Below, one piece after another: positions 11,543-40,846 of a stretch of 64,000 nt of DNA (positions are counted from its first letter, which is position 1; each line of letters begins with the position of its first letter). The notes beneath the pieces were generated by a model that did not search any database, was not told the origin of the DNA, and was given only the letters and a program-made list of their open reading frames with translations. The position numbers and the translations under genes are program-made. The stretch is taken from sequence record NC_023719.1; one strand, given 5' to 3'.

Positions 11543-11982
11543 GTTTGAGAGACCTATTTTGGGTCTCTTTTTTGTTTTTACAAAAAGTTACAAAATAATA
11601 CATGTGATTCAACGAGTGCAGCTTGATTCACAGGGTGCAGCTATAAATATAATTAATTAATAGATTAATAAGAATAAATAAAATAAGATATATAAAGATC
11701 GGCACTGCGTGCGCTGTTATTTCTTATCTTATATAATTAACAGATTTCTGTTTCAAAATCAATATGAAAAGATAATTAATTAGTGATATAATTTTAATAA
11801 AACAGACTTTTTTATGAGATTTAATGTTATTTAATGAAATGTTTAGAAAGTGATATTAGAATAAAGATAGCTATATTTTTAAATAATATATCAAGATATG
11901 ATAGTAGTGACATAATGAGTTAAAAAAAGCATGTACATGAAATAAAATAGAACAAGAGATTAGAGTTTTTGGAGGGTTAAAA

Positions 11983-12666
11983 ATGAAAGAAATAGAGAGC
12001 TATGTAGTAGATTGTTATGCAGATATTGAGATGATAGATTTTTTATTAGAAGTTTTACCAGATTATCAGAATGTTCTTATTGAGCGGCATCAGAAATTTG
12101 TAAATTCTTATTTGAAATATAAAAAGAAAATCAGAATGGTTGGAGTAACATATGGTTATTCAGATAAAGACATAAAGAGAATTTTTTGGAGAGTTCAAAG
12201 AAAACTTCTGTTAGAATTTATTAATAGAGTAGATCAAAATAAATTAACTATATCTGAAGCTATAAAGATTCCAAAGAATTTCGATGCATTTTTAATGTGG
12301 CAGTTACGACAATTTAGAGAAGATGCAGAAACAGTATTTATTTATATTCGTAGTAAGATGATCAAGAAACTTAATATAGATGGCGTATCAGTTAAGCGTA
12401 AAGATCAAATAACTGATGTTTTAAAAGAATTGTATACTATAGAAGATTTACAAAGTGTTTTACCAAAAAAGATTTATCCTATTGCTAATGATTTATTGAA
12501 TGGGATGTCATTAACTGAAGTAGCTAAGAAGTATGATAGAAATTTAAATTATTTAATTGTATCTATAGTAGGGGTAAAGAATCCTCGTAGTAAATCAGAG
12601 CGTGGTTGGTTAGCATATTTAGAGAATGACGTTGATAATAGAGTGATACAGTTTCCTGTTAAATAG
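11983..12666 (+). CDS. Hypothetical protein, possible C-terminal HTH
   Basis: GGAGG RBS; LLNGMSLTEVAKKY resembles an HTH. Confidence 0.7.
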   Translation: MKEIESYVVDCYADIEMIDFLLEVLPDYQNVLIERHQKFVNSYLKYKKKIRMVGVTYGYSDKDIKRIFWRVQRKLLLEFINRVDQNKLTISEAIKIPKNFDAFLMWQLRQFREDAETVFIYIRSKMIKKLNIDGVSVKRKDQITDVLKELYTIEDLQSVLPKKIYPIANDLLNGMSLTEVAKKYDRNLNYLIVSIVGVKNPRSKSERGWLAYLENDVDNRVIQFPVK

Positions 12667-24073: not shown

Positions 24074-25301
24074 TATATTAGAACGAAAAGGTTATGAGGC
24101 GTATTTAATTGGCGGAGCAGTTAGAAATACGCTTCACAATTTCAAGTATGGAGAAGAATTACCAATTAAGGATTTTGACATCGTTACGAATGCATCATGC
24201 GAACAAGTGATGGAATTATTTGAGGATACTGAGGCTAGAGGAGTTCAATTCAATGTAGCTGTGGTAAAGTTAGATGGTTATGAATTTGAAGTAGCTCAGT
24301 ATCGTGGAGAGTCTTATCCTGAAGGTGGATCTCTTCGTCCTGATAAAGTATATCCTGTACAAACTTTAGAGGAAGATTTGAAACGAAGAGATTTCACTAT
24401 TAATGCAATCGCAATGGACAAAATGGATCTTATTAGAGATCCATTAGAAGGTTGTATTGATATAAGAAATAGATTGATTAGAGCGATTGGTGACCCAAAT
24501 GAAAGGTTTTCTGAAGACCCATTGAGAATGATTCGAGCCTTCAGATTTATGTCTCAATTAGATTATTATTTAGATAAGAAAACTAAATTTGGGATTAAAA
24601 ACAACCTTGGTCTATTAAAAAACATACCACATGAAAGAATGAAGGCAGAGATTGACAAGATGTTGCGTGGTCAAGCTGTAGGGGTAGCATTGTTGAATAT
24701 GAAAATGGTAGGTGTTCATAAACATACCTTTTTAAATTCAATAACAAGTCAACAAGTTCCAGTATTAGATGGTGTATTAACTTTATCATATGAGCTGCTC
24801 AACGATGTGATACATAAATTAGAAGAATATGATAGAGACCAACTAGACATTACGGAACTTTATTATTTGTTGTATTACTACACAAGTTATGATGAAGCTG
24901 AAAAGAGTTTAAAAGAATCAATGTTTTTAAATGAAAAAGAAATTGAAAGAGTTTTATTGTTATTGAAGTACAATAAGATTCTGTTATCTAAAGATAATTT
25001 AGATATTTTCAATTTAGTAAAAGAAATTGGTGAGCAACGAGGGTTATCATATTTAAAAGATATTATAGATTCATATCATAAACTTCATCGAATTAATTTA
25101 GATTACTTGCTTGAAAAGTCATTATTTAAGAGTCAGCTTCCTTATAATGGAAATGATATAGTGATGTATGGCGAAAAGTTAAATATTAAGCCGGGTAAAT
25201 GGGTAGGGCAAGTGTTAGATAAAATGCAATTATATGCTATATCTGAAGTGGAGTACGAAATAGAGACTATAATAGAAGAAATGGTTGGTGATGGGAAATG
25301 A
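24045..25301 (+). CDS. cca: Class II tRNA nucleotidyltransferase (CCA-adding family)
   Basis: YLIGGAVRN, KDFDIV, DLKRRDFTINAIA, EDPLRMIRAFRF; start moved to TTG 24045 after GGAGG. Confidence 0.9.
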   Translation: MKSQAKKIIDILERKGYEAYLIGGAVRNTLHNFKYGEELPIKDFDIVTNASCEQVMELFEDTEARGVQFNVAVVKLDGYEFEVAQYRGESYPEGGSLRPDKVYPVQTLEEDLKRRDFTINAIAMDKMDLIRDPLEGCIDIRNRLIRAIGDPNERFSEDPLRMIRAFRFMSQLDYYLDKKTKFGIKNNLGLLKNIPHERMKAEIDKMLRGQAVGVALLNMKMVGVHKHTFLNSITSQQVPVLDGVLTLSYELLNDVIHKLEEYDRDQLDITELYYLLYYYTSYDEAEKSLKESMFLNEKEIERVLLLLKYNKILLSKDNLDIFNLVKEIGEQRGLSYLKDIIDSYHKLHRINLDYLLEKSLFKSQLPYNGNDIVMYGEKLNIKPGKWVGQVLDKMQLYAISEVEYEIETIIEEMVGDGK

Positions 25302-33057: not shown

Positions 33058-33192
33058 TTTGTTGTTAATTAAATCATTACTATTTATAATAATAGAATAT
33101 CTTAAAAATTAAACAAAAGGTGCTGCAGGAACTGAGAGAATTGTTCTTTACCATTTCCGTGAGTGTTAAATGAATTATCAGCCTTGTTTAAA

Positions 33193-33348
33193 TACCTGAA
33201 GCGGTAAAAGCAGTTACTTCGACATTATGAGTCCGTTGTCGGTGGTTCGAGTCCACCTCCCGCGACCATTTTAATTTATTAACTATTAACGCGGGATAGC
33301 TCAGTTGGTAGAGCACGTATATTACACTGTTTTAAATAATCTCAGGTA
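33193..33348 (+). ncRNA. yrlA: YrlA-like Y RNA (Y1) with circularly permuted tRNA module
   Basis: Conserved stem TGAAGCGG..AGCAGTTACTTC / CTGTTTT..ATCTCA enclosing T-arm, acceptor hairpin, then D-arm. Confidence 0.85.
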
Positions 33349-33523
33349 GTACATAAAGAGAAGAGAAATCTTCTCTTTTTTTATATTCTGTTAAAAAAGT
33401 TATTTACAAGTACTCAATTTTATGATATAATAAATATATAAGGATTAAATTTTATTAATTTATGTAATTTTCTTTATTTAATCTTATATTAAGTACTGAA
33501 TCAAAATTAAAAGGAGAGATAAG

Positions 33524-35361: not shown

Positions 35362-35413
35362 TATTTTTTTTTTGAACATAATAATGTACATAAAAACTAG
35401 GGGGAATAATCTA

Positions 35414-37045
35414 ATGAGTAAAATGTCTAAAAAAGTAAAAGAAACACGTAAAGCAGAAGTACTAAAACCAGTAGAGAACTTTATGGGTGGAATTTCTTAT
35501 GAACATAATCCATTACTAACTCTAAAAATGGTTAGCGCAAGTTCTATTTTTGGTGAACCCCAATACTATCGCTCAGGTGAATTTGCAGAAAAGAACGTAA
35601 GAGATGGTTCTTATCGTATTAATTCTGTATTATCTAAGTACGATATGCTTTTAGGTAAAACGTTTAATGATAAAAACACAAGTGAGATCATGGAAGAAGT
35701 GATTGATGCTGCTTTATCATATGATTTTGAAGGAACTTTACGATGGGCTGTAGAGCTACGTAAAGATTTCTATATGCGTTTAAATCCTCAAGTTATCATG
35801 GTACGCGCTGCGATGCATGAAGATCGTGCTGAATTTAACGAGAAAAACCCAGGTTTATTTGCTCAAATTCAAAAAGATGTTATGAGTCGTGCCGATGAAC
35901 CATCTAGCCAGTTAACTTATTGGTTACACAATAAGGGTTCTAAATCCGGTATTCCTAGTATCTTAAAACGTACTTGGAAGAATCGTTTAGAAAGCATGAC
36001 TCGTTATGAAGCTGCTAAGTACAAAAATGCAAATGTCGGAATGATTGACACTGCTCGTATTTCACATGCGAAAGGTGATTTAGTTGGAGAATTATTAACT
36101 ACTGGTACTATTGAGGTAGATGATTCTCAAAGCACATGGAATGTTTTACGTTCTAATGGCCAATCTTGGAAAGAGATTTTATCAACTATTCAATTACCAC
36201 ACATGGCATTATTACGTAATTTACGTGGTATCTTTGAAGAAGTTAATAACAAAGATCTATGTAAAGAACAAATGGATCAATTAAAAGCTGGCGTAGTAAG
36301 AGGAAAGCAGTTCCCATTCCGTTATTACCAAGCTTATAAAATGGTTTCTATTAGCTCTGTTAATCATAAGCAATTAATCATGGATACCCTTGAGGAATGT
36401 ATTGATATTGCTTTAGAAAACATGCCTAAATTGAAAGGTAAAACGGTAGTTTTAACTGACAATTCCGGTAGTGCACATGGAGCCTTTACTTCAGAATATG
36501 GAACAGTAAATGTAGCGCAAATTAACAATTTGTCTGCCGTATTAACTGCTAAGAATGCTGAAGATGGAGAAGTATACACATTTGGTGACCAACTCAAAGA
36601 AATTCCGATTTCTAAGAGAAATGGAGCTTTAATCCAAGCGAAAGAAGTTGATCGCGTTGGACAAACAGTAGGTATGGGTACCGAACATGGTGTATGGTTG
36701 TACTTGGATAAGATCATTCGCAATAAGATCCATGTGGATAACTTATTTATCTATAGCGATATGCAAGCTGGTCATGGCCGTTTATATGGTACTAACGCAA
36801 GCCAATATAGCAAATATATTGTTAATGGTCATTATATTGACGTATATAAGCTAATTGAGGAATATCGTTCAAAGGTGAATCCGAAAGTAAATGTTTTCAC
36901 TGTTCAAACTGCGGGTTATTCCAATGTGTTGATTCCAGAAGTGATGCATAGAGGTTCTGTTTTATATGGTTGGACTGGTAAAGAGACTGTCTATGCTGAA
37001 CAGATGATTAAGCTTTGGGAACAAGCAGAAATGAAAAAGCAATAA
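35414..37045 (+). CDS. rsr: Ro60/TROVE domain RNA-binding protein with C-terminal vWA domain
   Basis: N.MGG.SY, SS.FGEPQYY, R.DFYMRLNP, LPHMALLRNLRG, QFPFRYY.AY, vWA MIDAS-like LTDNSGS, IYSDMQ, GWT; start moved to ATG 35414. Confidence 0.92.
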   Translation: MSKMSKKVKETRKAEVLKPVENFMGGISYEHNPLLTLKMVSASSIFGEPQYYRSGEFAEKNVRDGSYRINSVLSKYDMLLGKTFNDKNTSEIMEEVIDAALSYDFEGTLRWAVELRKDFYMRLNPQVIMVRAAMHEDRAEFNEKNPGLFAQIQKDVMSRADEPSSQLTYWLHNKGSKSGIPSILKRTWKNRLESMTRYEAAKYKNANVGMIDTARISHAKGDLVGELLTTGTIEVDDSQSTWNVLRSNGQSWKEILSTIQLPHMALLRNLRGIFEEVNNKDLCKEQMDQLKAGVVRGKQFPFRYYQAYKMVSISSVNHKQLIMDTLEECIDIALENMPKLKGKTVVLTDNSGSAHGAFTSEYGTVNVAQINNLSAVLTAKNAEDGEVYTFGDQLKEIPISKRNGALIQAKEVDRVGQTVGMGTEHGVWLYLDKIIRNKIHVDNLFIYSDMQAGHGRLYGTNASQYSKYIVNGHYIDVYKLIEEYRSKVNPKVNVFTVQTAGYSNVLIPEVMHRGSVLYGWTGKETVYAEQMIKLWEQAEMKKQ

Positions 37046-38861: not shown

Positions 38862-38920
38862 AAAAGTTTTAACTAGTTGTTATATTTCCAATGATTTTGT
38901 ATATAATAGATATACCTTAT

Positions 38921-38996
38921 TCACCAGTAGCTCAGCGGTAGTAGCACCTGACTGTTAATCAGGGGGTCGTAGGTTCGAATCCTACCTGGTGAGCCA
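38921..38996 (+). tRNA. tRNA-Asn(GUU)
   Basis: U1-A72 acceptor, loop CTGTTAA, GCCA end. Confidence 0.93.
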
Positions 38997-39002
38997 TATT
39001 AA

Positions 39003-39077
39003 TGCCGGATAGCCAAGTGGTAAGGCAATGGACTTTGACTCCATGATACAGAGGTTCGAATCCTTTTCCGGCAGCCA
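39003..39077 (+). tRNA. tRNA-Gln(UUG)
   Basis: Loop CTTTGAC, GCCA end. Confidence 0.92.
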
Positions 39078-39088
39078 AATAGTAATAC

Positions 39089-39228
39089 TGCCAAGAAGCA
39101 TGTCCTGGTGTAATCGCAGAAACGCGAATCATGCACACTATGAAAATAGTGGTTATCTAAGGCTAATGAGTATAAAAGTCGACGTATACTTTCTTAGATA
39201 CGAAGGTTCGATTCCTTCCTCGGCAACC
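39089..39228 (+). ncRNA. Oversized tRNA-like RNA (about 140 nt)
   Basis: Acceptor TGCCAAG / CTCGGCA and canonical T-arm GAAGG-TTCGATT-CCTTC, but expanded D-loop and giant variable arm. Confidence 0.7.
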
Positions 39229-39233
39229 GTTAT

Positions 39234-39308
39234 GGTGGTTGTAGCTCAATTGGTTAGAGCGCTAGATTGTGGATCTAGAGGTTGTGGGTTCGATCCCCAT
39301 CATCCACC
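39234..39308 (+). tRNA. tRNA-His(GUG), CCA incomplete
   Basis: G-1 and C73; loop TTGTGGA. Confidence 0.9.
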
Positions 39309-39319
39309 CTTATAGATTT

Positions 39320-39394
39320 GGGGTGTTGGCGAAGTGATAACGCATCCGACTTTCTATCGGACATTCGCGGGTTTGAATCCCGTACACCCTTCCA
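39320..39394 (+). tRNA. Atypical tRNA with UUC (Glu) anticodon
   Basis: Cloverleaf; loop CTTTCTA; T-loop TTTGAAT; CCA encoded. Confidence 0.7.
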
Positions 39395-39527
39395 GTAATG
39401 ATTAGCCAAGCAGGCGGTTTAAGTTATCGCAACTTAACAAAATGCCAAGATGAATGTTATCCCGGCAGCTTATGAGAGATTGTTGGGAATAGCTTCTCTT
39501 GATTTTAAATTTAAAGGAGGAATTAAT

Positions 39528-39931: not shown

Positions 39932-40003
39932 GGTTCATTGGTCAAGTGGTAAAGACACCTTCCCTTACGGAAGGTAACATAGGTTCGACTCCTATATGGG
40001 CCG
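39932..40003 (+). tRNA. Glu/Asp-like tRNA body with aberrant anticodon loop (identity unresolved)
   Basis: Acceptor, D and T arms canonical; anticodon arm CCTTC-CCTTACG-GAAGG; CCA not encoded. Confidence 0.6.
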
Positions 40004-40059
40004 CCTAATATGTTGCAGAGATTAAGCTAATTGTAGCGCTGCAGCATTATTCTTAACGA

Positions 40060-40766: not shown

Positions 40767-40846
40767 TTAACAAATTATTGAAGCGGTAGTAACAGATACT
40801 TCTTGCTGATGAAAAAACTGTTACAGTTAATCTCAATAGTTTTTAA
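40767..40846 (+). ncRNA. Y-RNA-like module Y7 (minimal, detached copy)
   Basis: TGAAGCGG-TAGT-AACAGATACTTC, 15-nt loop, CTGTTAC..ATCTCA. Confidence 0.78.

Follow-up and report, generated by a model that had tools for sequence, protein, structure and literature searches.

The tRNA clusters of phages are usually seen only as aids to codon usage or as a source of substitutes for host tRNAs that have been cleaved. At the end of its cluster, T4 encodes two further stable RNAs, RNAC and RNAD, which have reportedly remained unexplained for fifty years. RNAC (species 1 RNA, rnaC; NC_000866, 70908-71046) is 139 nt long and folds into a terminal stem of seven positions, two of them U·U, a long body hairpin, a 10-bp hairpin and a canonical T-arm; the 10-bp hairpin lies 1 nt before the T-arm, and the T-arm runs directly into the 3' strand that closes the terminal stem. 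In a 2022 omics analysis of T4, RNAC and RNAD were described as expressed, with confirmation by Northern blot, and of unknown function (PMC9697503). Bacterial Y RNAs such as YrlA (RF02553) and Yrn1, whose genes are found close to one for Ro60, also imitate tRNAs without decoding. Mimicry of tRNA is the hallmark of these molecules, and the published model of Yrn1 from D. radiodurans places a stem of 5 bp and a loop of 6 nt where a tRNA has its anticodon (PMC4201824).

The RNA gene analyzed here belongs to Bacillus phage G (JN638751/NC_023719; genome of 497 kb). The window, that is, the whole stretch of 64,000 nucleotides under study, corresponds to positions 372001-436000 of the genome, and all coordinates are given with respect to it unless marked as genome. 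From its sequence, fold and pair probabilities, the gene was delimited on the + strand at 39089-39226, 138 nt from acceptor to discriminator A, and encodes a tRNA-shaped RNA. It is located in the second tRNA region of the phage, where it occupies the third place in a block of five genes with tRNA-like spacing, all on the + strand: tRNA-Asn(GUU) (38921-38996; Rfam score of 65.5 bits), tRNA-Gln(UUG) (39003-39077), the 138-nt RNA, tRNA-His(GUG) with its G-1 (39234-39309, called as 39235-39309) and, as the final tRNA, tRNA-Glu(UUC) (39320-39394). The distance to the CCA of tRNA-Gln is 11 nt, and 7 nt separate the discriminator from G-1 of tRNA-His. The position in a tRNA operon between Gln and His, already indicated in the first-pass annotation, was confirmed by ARAGORN, Rfam and the GenBank annotation of the flanking genes. 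In the GenBank record JN638751 the Asn, Gln, His and Glu tRNAs are annotated, with nothing entered in the 157 nt that separate Gln from His, and the gene is unannotated; it is present as a single copy in the phage G genome. Ahead of the block there is a promoter-like site (TTATAT, 16 nt, TATAAT; 38880-38907, + strand), 74-75% similar to further promoter-like sequences in the phage genome (repeat families D9 and D14), which we infer to be the promoter of the Asn-Gln-138-nt RNA-His-Glu operon. The discriminator A (39226) is followed by CCG in place of CCA (39226-39229), and the 3' trailer CCGUUAU (39227-39233), with no encoded CCA, precedes G-1 of tRNA-His. An encoded CCA is found in 12 of the 17 phage G tRNAs and is absent in the other 5.

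The predicted fold is a four-armed cloverleaf. The acceptor UGCCAAG/CUCGGCA (39089-39095/39219-39225) consists of six Watson-Crick pairs and an A5·C68 mismatch, with pair probabilities of 0.78-1.0 at the paired positions, the mismatch excepted; the first-pass annotation had listed this stem correctly, but without mentioning the mismatch. Positions 8-9 are AA (39096-39097). They are followed by a D-arm with a 5-bp stem, GCAUG/CAUGC (39098-39102/39130-39134; probability 0.88-0.89), and a D-loop of 27 nt (39103-39129) that contains CCUGGUG, with the GG kept. The CGC-AGAAAC-GCG hairpin previously proposed in this loop, together with the D-stem and TGGT, can be read in the sequence, but it has only 3 bp and is weak, and the minimum free energy (MFE) fold favours a different 4-bp pairing. 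The anticodon-like arm CACUA-UGAAAA-UAGUG (39136-39151; 0.99-1.0) combines, as had been noted, 5 bp of stem with a loop of 6 nt. This loop reads U33-GAA-A37-A38 with nucleotide 32 missing and resembles a Phe loop without that nucleotide. After a GU linker (39152-39153) comes a variable arm of around 47 nt (39154-39200; 0.65-1.0), built from an outer helix of 8 bp (TATCTAAG/CTTAGATA), a 7/2-nt internal loop and an inner helix of 6 bp, the AGTATA/TATACT pairing of the first-pass annotation, closed by a 10-nt loop, AAAGTCGACG (in RNA form AAAGUCGACG). The variable region as a whole measures 50 nt. A single C (39201) connects this arm to the T-arm GAAGG-UUCGAUU-CCUUC (39202-39218), which is canonical and perfect, as claimed.

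Altogether, 35 of the 36 pairs are canonical and the MFE is -38.3 kcal/mol, compared with -27.9±3.3 for shuffled sequences (z -3.1; 1 of 200 shuffles as good). The helices beyond the acceptor have pair probabilities of 0.65-1.0, and, if called tRNA and tmRNA genes are set aside, T-arms as perfect as this one occur only around ten times on both strands of the whole genome, several of them inside other tRNA-like elements. Given the z score, the pair probabilities and the rarity of such T-arms, the structure is not the product of chance.

Two elements of this fold deserve separate mention. The 10-nt loop of the variable arm holds the palindrome GUCGAC, through which the RNA could pair with itself; this is a lead only, since a palindromic 6-mer would arise by chance in roughly 8% of such purine-flanked loops. 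In the phage G genome GTCGAC is under-represented, with 11 occurrences against 28 expected. The anticodon-like hairpin (16 nt, CACTATGAAAATAGTG) recurs at around 167904-167925 of the genome, with 20 of 21 positions identical when the flanks are included; there it forms the stem-loop of a terminator-like structure that lies past the end of a gene and has a T-run behind it. This recurrence may be due to chance or may reflect a common protein-binding hairpin.

Comparison with T4 RNAC reveals a shared layout. Both are RNAs of about 140 nt encoded in a phage tRNA cluster, with a short acceptor-like terminal stem stacked on a canonical T-arm (CCGGG-UUCGAAU-CCCGG in RNAC) and, 1 nt upstream of the T-arm, a long hairpin, and RNAC also lacks a usable anticodon loop. 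However, RNAC has one long hairpin where the phage G RNA has separate D and anticodon arms, it is located at the end of the cluster rather than between two tRNAs, and T4 has no Ro60. No homology between the two was detected with sequence or profile comparisons: R1, a covariance model derived from the single phage G sequence, scores rnaC at 13.5 bits, below five T4 tRNAs.

The first tRNA cluster of phage G contains a second oversized tRNA-like RNA, 127 nt in length (genome 59864-59990), on which ARAGORN and Rfam make no call. Its acceptor of 6 bp (GCAGGU/ACCUGC) encloses a D-like hairpin, a middle arm that branches and a T-arm (GAGAG-UUUGAUU-CUCUC), U and an encoded CCA come last, and the MFE is -35.9 kcal/mol (z around -2.9). 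Other unusual elements were observed in the tRNA regions of the phage. These include a tRNA-Trp(CCA)-like gene that scores 37 bits with Rfam and is missed by ARAGORN (genome 60603-60676) and, just upstream of it, a mini-helix of about 50 nt in which a perfect acceptor-like stem of 7 bp is combined with part of a T-arm (genome 60546-60594). In addition, the gene at 39932-40005, reported as 'Stop (tta)' by ARAGORN and as 'tRNA-other' in GenBank, has an anticodon arm CCUUCC-CUUAC-GGAAGG compatible with a stem of 6 bp and a loop of 5 nt; instead of a UAA suppressor, this gene may be a further tRNA of non-standard type. Genes with a 6-nt anticodon loop, labelled 'tRNA-???' by ARAGORN, exist elsewhere in tRNA clusters of unrelated Bacillus-type phages, namely in a Bacillus phage BC-T25 locus (2579-2650) and in a metagenomic phage locus (13064-13136). 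Like the 138-nt RNA they have bodies in the normal tRNA order, but they are of normal size, lack the expansions of the D-loop and variable arm and cannot be aligned with it past generic tRNA features. The gap between the Gln and His tRNAs of BC-T25 is 156 nt, close to the length of that in phage G, but lacks a T-arm.

With respect to canonical tRNAs, the molecule is split in two. Its acceptor/T half consists of a 7-bp acceptor, with the one A·C mismatch, on a 5-bp T-stem, with a T-loop of the UUCRANY type and the G53-C61 pair. In the other half, the anticodon loop has 6 nt instead of the 7 nt that comprise U33, three anticodon bases and a purine at 37; A8 replaces U8, G14-C21 replaces A14/A21, lengthening the D-stem to 5 bp, and the D-loop has 27 nt versus 7-11 in tRNAs. 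ARAGORN, including its intron and low-threshold modes, does not call the gene, and the Rfam model RF00005 reaches 13.8 bits, against a gathering threshold of 29, with a match that spans the T-arm and acceptor only. In silico, the D-loop and variable region were shortened to normal lengths in 650 combinations, which were submitted to ARAGORN. None of the 650 was called with the native 6-nt loop; when one pyrimidine was added at position 32, tRNA-Phe(GAA) was reported in 147 of the 650 variants, and leaving either expansion in place abolished all calls, so that each of the three departures is sufficient to block recognition. The calls obtained after trimming and addition of one nucleotide indicate that the skeleton is derived from a tRNA, and three features, the 6-nt loop, the 27-nt D-loop and the 50-nt variable region, exclude the RNA from the tRNA class. 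These data, together with the changes at positions 8, 14 and 21 and the lack of calls by ARAGORN and Rfam, support its earlier description as non-decoding.

Length variation is tolerated in tRNAs solely at the D-loop and the variable region, and both expansions of the phage G RNA are located at these sites. As in class II tRNAs (Leu, Ser, Tyr, Sec), its variable arm begins 2 nt past the anticodon stem and finishes 1 nt before the T-stem, and the acceptor/T stack is 7/5. It differs from them in its two-helix arm, which at around 47 nt is two to three times as long as the largest natural ones, in the size of its D-loop (27 nt) and anticodon loop (6 nt), and in a loop sequence that is Phe-like, tRNA-Phe being a class I tRNA. 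Several specific assignments were considered and rejected. An origin as a recent duplicate of tRNA-Phe does not agree with the fact that the tRNA-Phe of phage G is among the tRNAs least similar to it; a tRNA-Sec would require a different anticodon and a stack other than 7/5; and the presence of an intron was discarded because the sequence lacks a group I core and its helices and loops do not have the geometry of a bulge-helix-bulge.

Considering all of the above, we regard the gene as probably encoding, on a modest balance of the evidence, a functional, tRNA-derived and tRNA-shaped mimic that does not decode and is comparable to T4 RNAC; it may act as the mimic, decoy or scaffold put forward in the first-pass annotation. 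The main rival reading, unlikely in our opinion and still carrying real weight, is that it is a decaying tRNA duplicate with Gln-like ends, in other words a pseudogene with two hairpin insertions and a 1-nt deletion in the loop, transcribed with the operon and functionless. The closest match is the adjacent tRNA-Gln, its presumed nearest paralogue in the acceptor and T-arm: of the last 30 nt, in the 3' third, 23 are identical (20 of 30 for the next best, tRNA-Asn; 25 of 32 in repeat family D7), both genes start with UGCC and finish with GGCA, and CCA has become CCG. The A5·C68 mismatch, the loss of invariant core bases and the failure of both tRNA finders to call the gene would also fit a process of decay. 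Against this, the comparison with tRNA-Gln uncovers three double changes that maintain pairing (49-65 from A-U to G-C, 6-67 from G-C to A-U, 7-66 from A-U to G-C) and a change from G·U to A-U at 50-64, with 5-68 as the sole new mismatch; this covariation signal comes from one genome and assumes paralogy with tRNA-Gln. The D and anticodon arms have nothing in common with those of any phage G tRNA, yet they are perfect, and nearly all pairs of the molecule are canonical as described above. Both insertions form perfect helices at tolerated sites and copy no repeat of the genome, and a mobile-element origin was rejected for them, as they are not repeated anywhere in phage G. Finally, the GC content of the gene is 41%, well above the 30% of the genome. 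The compensatory changes, the perfect D and anticodon arms, the tolerated and single-copy insertions and the GC content would argue for selection on the fold, and make plausible the statement in the first-pass annotation that the RNA is too well paired to be the result of decay.

Two further observations can be put on the side of decay. The first is a fragment of 27 nt (TGCCAAGATGAATG..TCCCGGCAG; 39443-39469), located 350 nt downstream and just upstream of gp550, whose first 14 nt match the 5' end of the 138-nt RNA at 12 positions (0.36 such matches expected per window) and whose end resembles the 3' strand of the tRNA-Gln acceptor. It is probably a sister copy that has suffered a deletion, and as a truncated, X-like and Gln-like piece (X being the 138-nt RNA) it indicates that the region also holds debris of tRNA genes. 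The second is the absence of detectable homologues. A blastn search with the operon and the first 112 nt of the gene against 50,697 phage records retrieved only phage G itself; exact-pattern scans of IMG/VR, JGI metagenome contigs and GTDB genomes gave no matches to the RNA, nor did protein-anchored searches in IMG/VR with gp540, gp550 and gp542. R1 detected only ordinary tRNAs, at 8-22 bits, when run on the window, eight loci beside Ro60 homologues, the tRNA clusters of BC-T25 and T4, and the first tRNA cluster of phage G. This lack of homologues can be attributed to phage G having no sampled close relative in the collections searched, and the comparison has little reach, as even for the neighbouring Ro60 gene the closest relative sampled is only 63% identical at the protein level; the negative outcome of the homologue test proposed in the first-pass annotation therefore does not weigh against the RNA.

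The vicinity of that Ro60 gene leads to a different explanation, which we consider quite improbable, according to which the RNA would be an eighth Y-RNA-type partner or client of the Ro60 protein gp540, acting as a tRNA-like effector module of the Ro60/Y-RNA system encoded 2-6 kb upstream. The gp540 gene (35372-37045, + strand), identified through its GenBank note and its Pfam and PDB matches, ends 2 kb upstream of the 138-nt RNA on the same strand. The product scores 20.5 bits with the Pfam TROVE model, under the cut-off of 23, and matches TROVE proteins in PDB with an E value of 3e-9; its homologues number in the thousands, many of them with PF05731, the best being 63% identical, and their neighbourhoods are not syntenic with that of phage G. 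A pattern search located a Y-RNA scaffold, TGAWGCGG...ACAGTTACTTC, seven times around gp540 (33197, 34674, 34874, 34981, 35105, 35210 and 40779), followed in at least five copies by a 3' partner repeat, ..CTGTT..ATCTCA (repeat family D5; also read after 40779). The seventh copy (40777-40836) is a minimal version situated inside the same tRNA cluster as the 138-nt RNA. The first copy holds a permuted tRNA domain of the YrlA type (33233-33319; RF02553, 36 bits, gathering threshold 69), in which a T-arm is followed by an acceptor hairpin with ACCA and an AT-rich loop of 27 nt, and then by a D-arm; the transcript of this YrlA-like RNA would extend roughly from 33100 to 33385, 2 kb upstream of the Ro60 gene.

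The resemblance of the 138-nt RNA to Y RNAs includes its non-decoding tRNA mimicry, its location and the stem and loop sizes of the anticodon arm, equal to those in the model of Yrn1. Also, in a related metagenomic phage with a Ro60 protein 60% identical to gp540 (locus 11670-12170), scaffolds of the form GAAGCGG..ACAGTTACTTC...CTGTT..ATTCTCG enclose tRNA-like modules in the normal order. ARAGORN reports those modules as tRNA-Lys and tRNA-Thr; being enclosed by Y scaffolds, part of the apparent tRNA set of that phage would really correspond to Y RNAs. However, in phage G neither half of the scaffold was found by pattern search within 39089-39228, and the published Ro60 motif GNCGAAN0-1G (PMC4201824) is absent from the sequence of the RNA, the nearest being GUCGACG in the loop of the variable arm. 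The molecule has the order of a tRNA and free acceptor ends, a 7-bp stem and not a long docking stem, whereas Y RNAs have a permuted order with T-arm, acceptor stem and D-arm, and the YrlA model gives no match to the RNA alone. A YrlA match at 39179-39288 (24 bits, versus a gathering threshold of 69) joins its T-arm to the D-arm of tRNA-His and was rejected as a dimeric-tRNA artefact of the kind that the authors of the YrlA model warned of. Lacking the docking scaffold common to the seven Y RNAs, it is not a member of that set, and an RNA of similar layout exists in T4 without any Ro60.

That the RNA could be a working, aminoacylated decoder, either an odd tRNA-Phe(GAA) or a frameshifter with a 6-nt loop or one of 8 nt if the last A-U pair were open (anticodon GAAA), is very improbable, since the U-GAA-AA loop, discriminator A73, U59 and U60 of the T-loop and an intact acceptor/T half, features of which A73, U59, U60 and the GAA anticodon are among the identity elements of E. 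coli tRNA-Phe, stand against an anticodon arm 1 nt shorter than that of every canonical tRNA, a 27-nt D-loop at the elbow, the part that contacts the ribosome, the absence of U8, A14 and A21, an Rfam score under half of the gathering value, and the presence of a canonical tRNA-Phe(GAA) in phage G (genome 59296-59371).

If the RNA is a non-decoding mimic, as we favour, it would be co-transcribed with its neighbours, transcription starting at the promoter-like site (38880-38907). Its 5' end would then be cut by RNase P and its 3' end by RNase Z or exonucleases, guided by the acceptor/T stack, and CCA could be added by the host enzyme or by one of two phage nucleotidyltransferases of the PolyA_pol family (CCA-adding type), whose genes are at approximately 24099-24482 of the window (genome 396099-396482) and at 136268-136594 of the genome. 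No RtcB ligase was found in phage G, and a context of RtcB-type repair was therefore discarded. The product would accumulate as an RNA of about 140 nt, entering tRNA-recognising pathways via its acceptor/T half and staying out of translation. An L-shape is assumed for it, with a core that lacks U8, A14 and A21. The expansions, chiefly the 14-bp variable arm with its GUCGAC loop, would constitute the working surface, through a protein partner or through RNA-RNA pairing. A broader proposal, fairly unlikely and offered as speculation, is that this RNA, the one at genome 59864-59990 and T4 RNAC form an unrecognised class of operon-encoded, CCA-tailed, tRNA-shaped RNAs barred from the ribosome. Through their expansions, these RNAs would recruit or titrate a factor that handles tRNAs, for instance the Ro60/Y-RNA machinery of the phage or an enzyme of the host that processes tRNAs or targets them in defence.

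This work adds an unannotated gene to the record that serves as reference for the largest phage so far cultured. The setting in which it is found, with a Ro60 gene and seven Y RNAs adjacent to it and phage nucleotidyltransferases of the CCA family nearby, and the growth of phage G on Priestia megaterium make this a tractable system for finding the binding partners of such molecules. With phage G there is a second phage, unrelated to T4, that has RNAs with the layout of RNAC, in which the handles for processing are kept, decoding is disabled and arms have been added, and our analysis suggests that such RNAs may be a recurrent solution rather than an oddity of T4.
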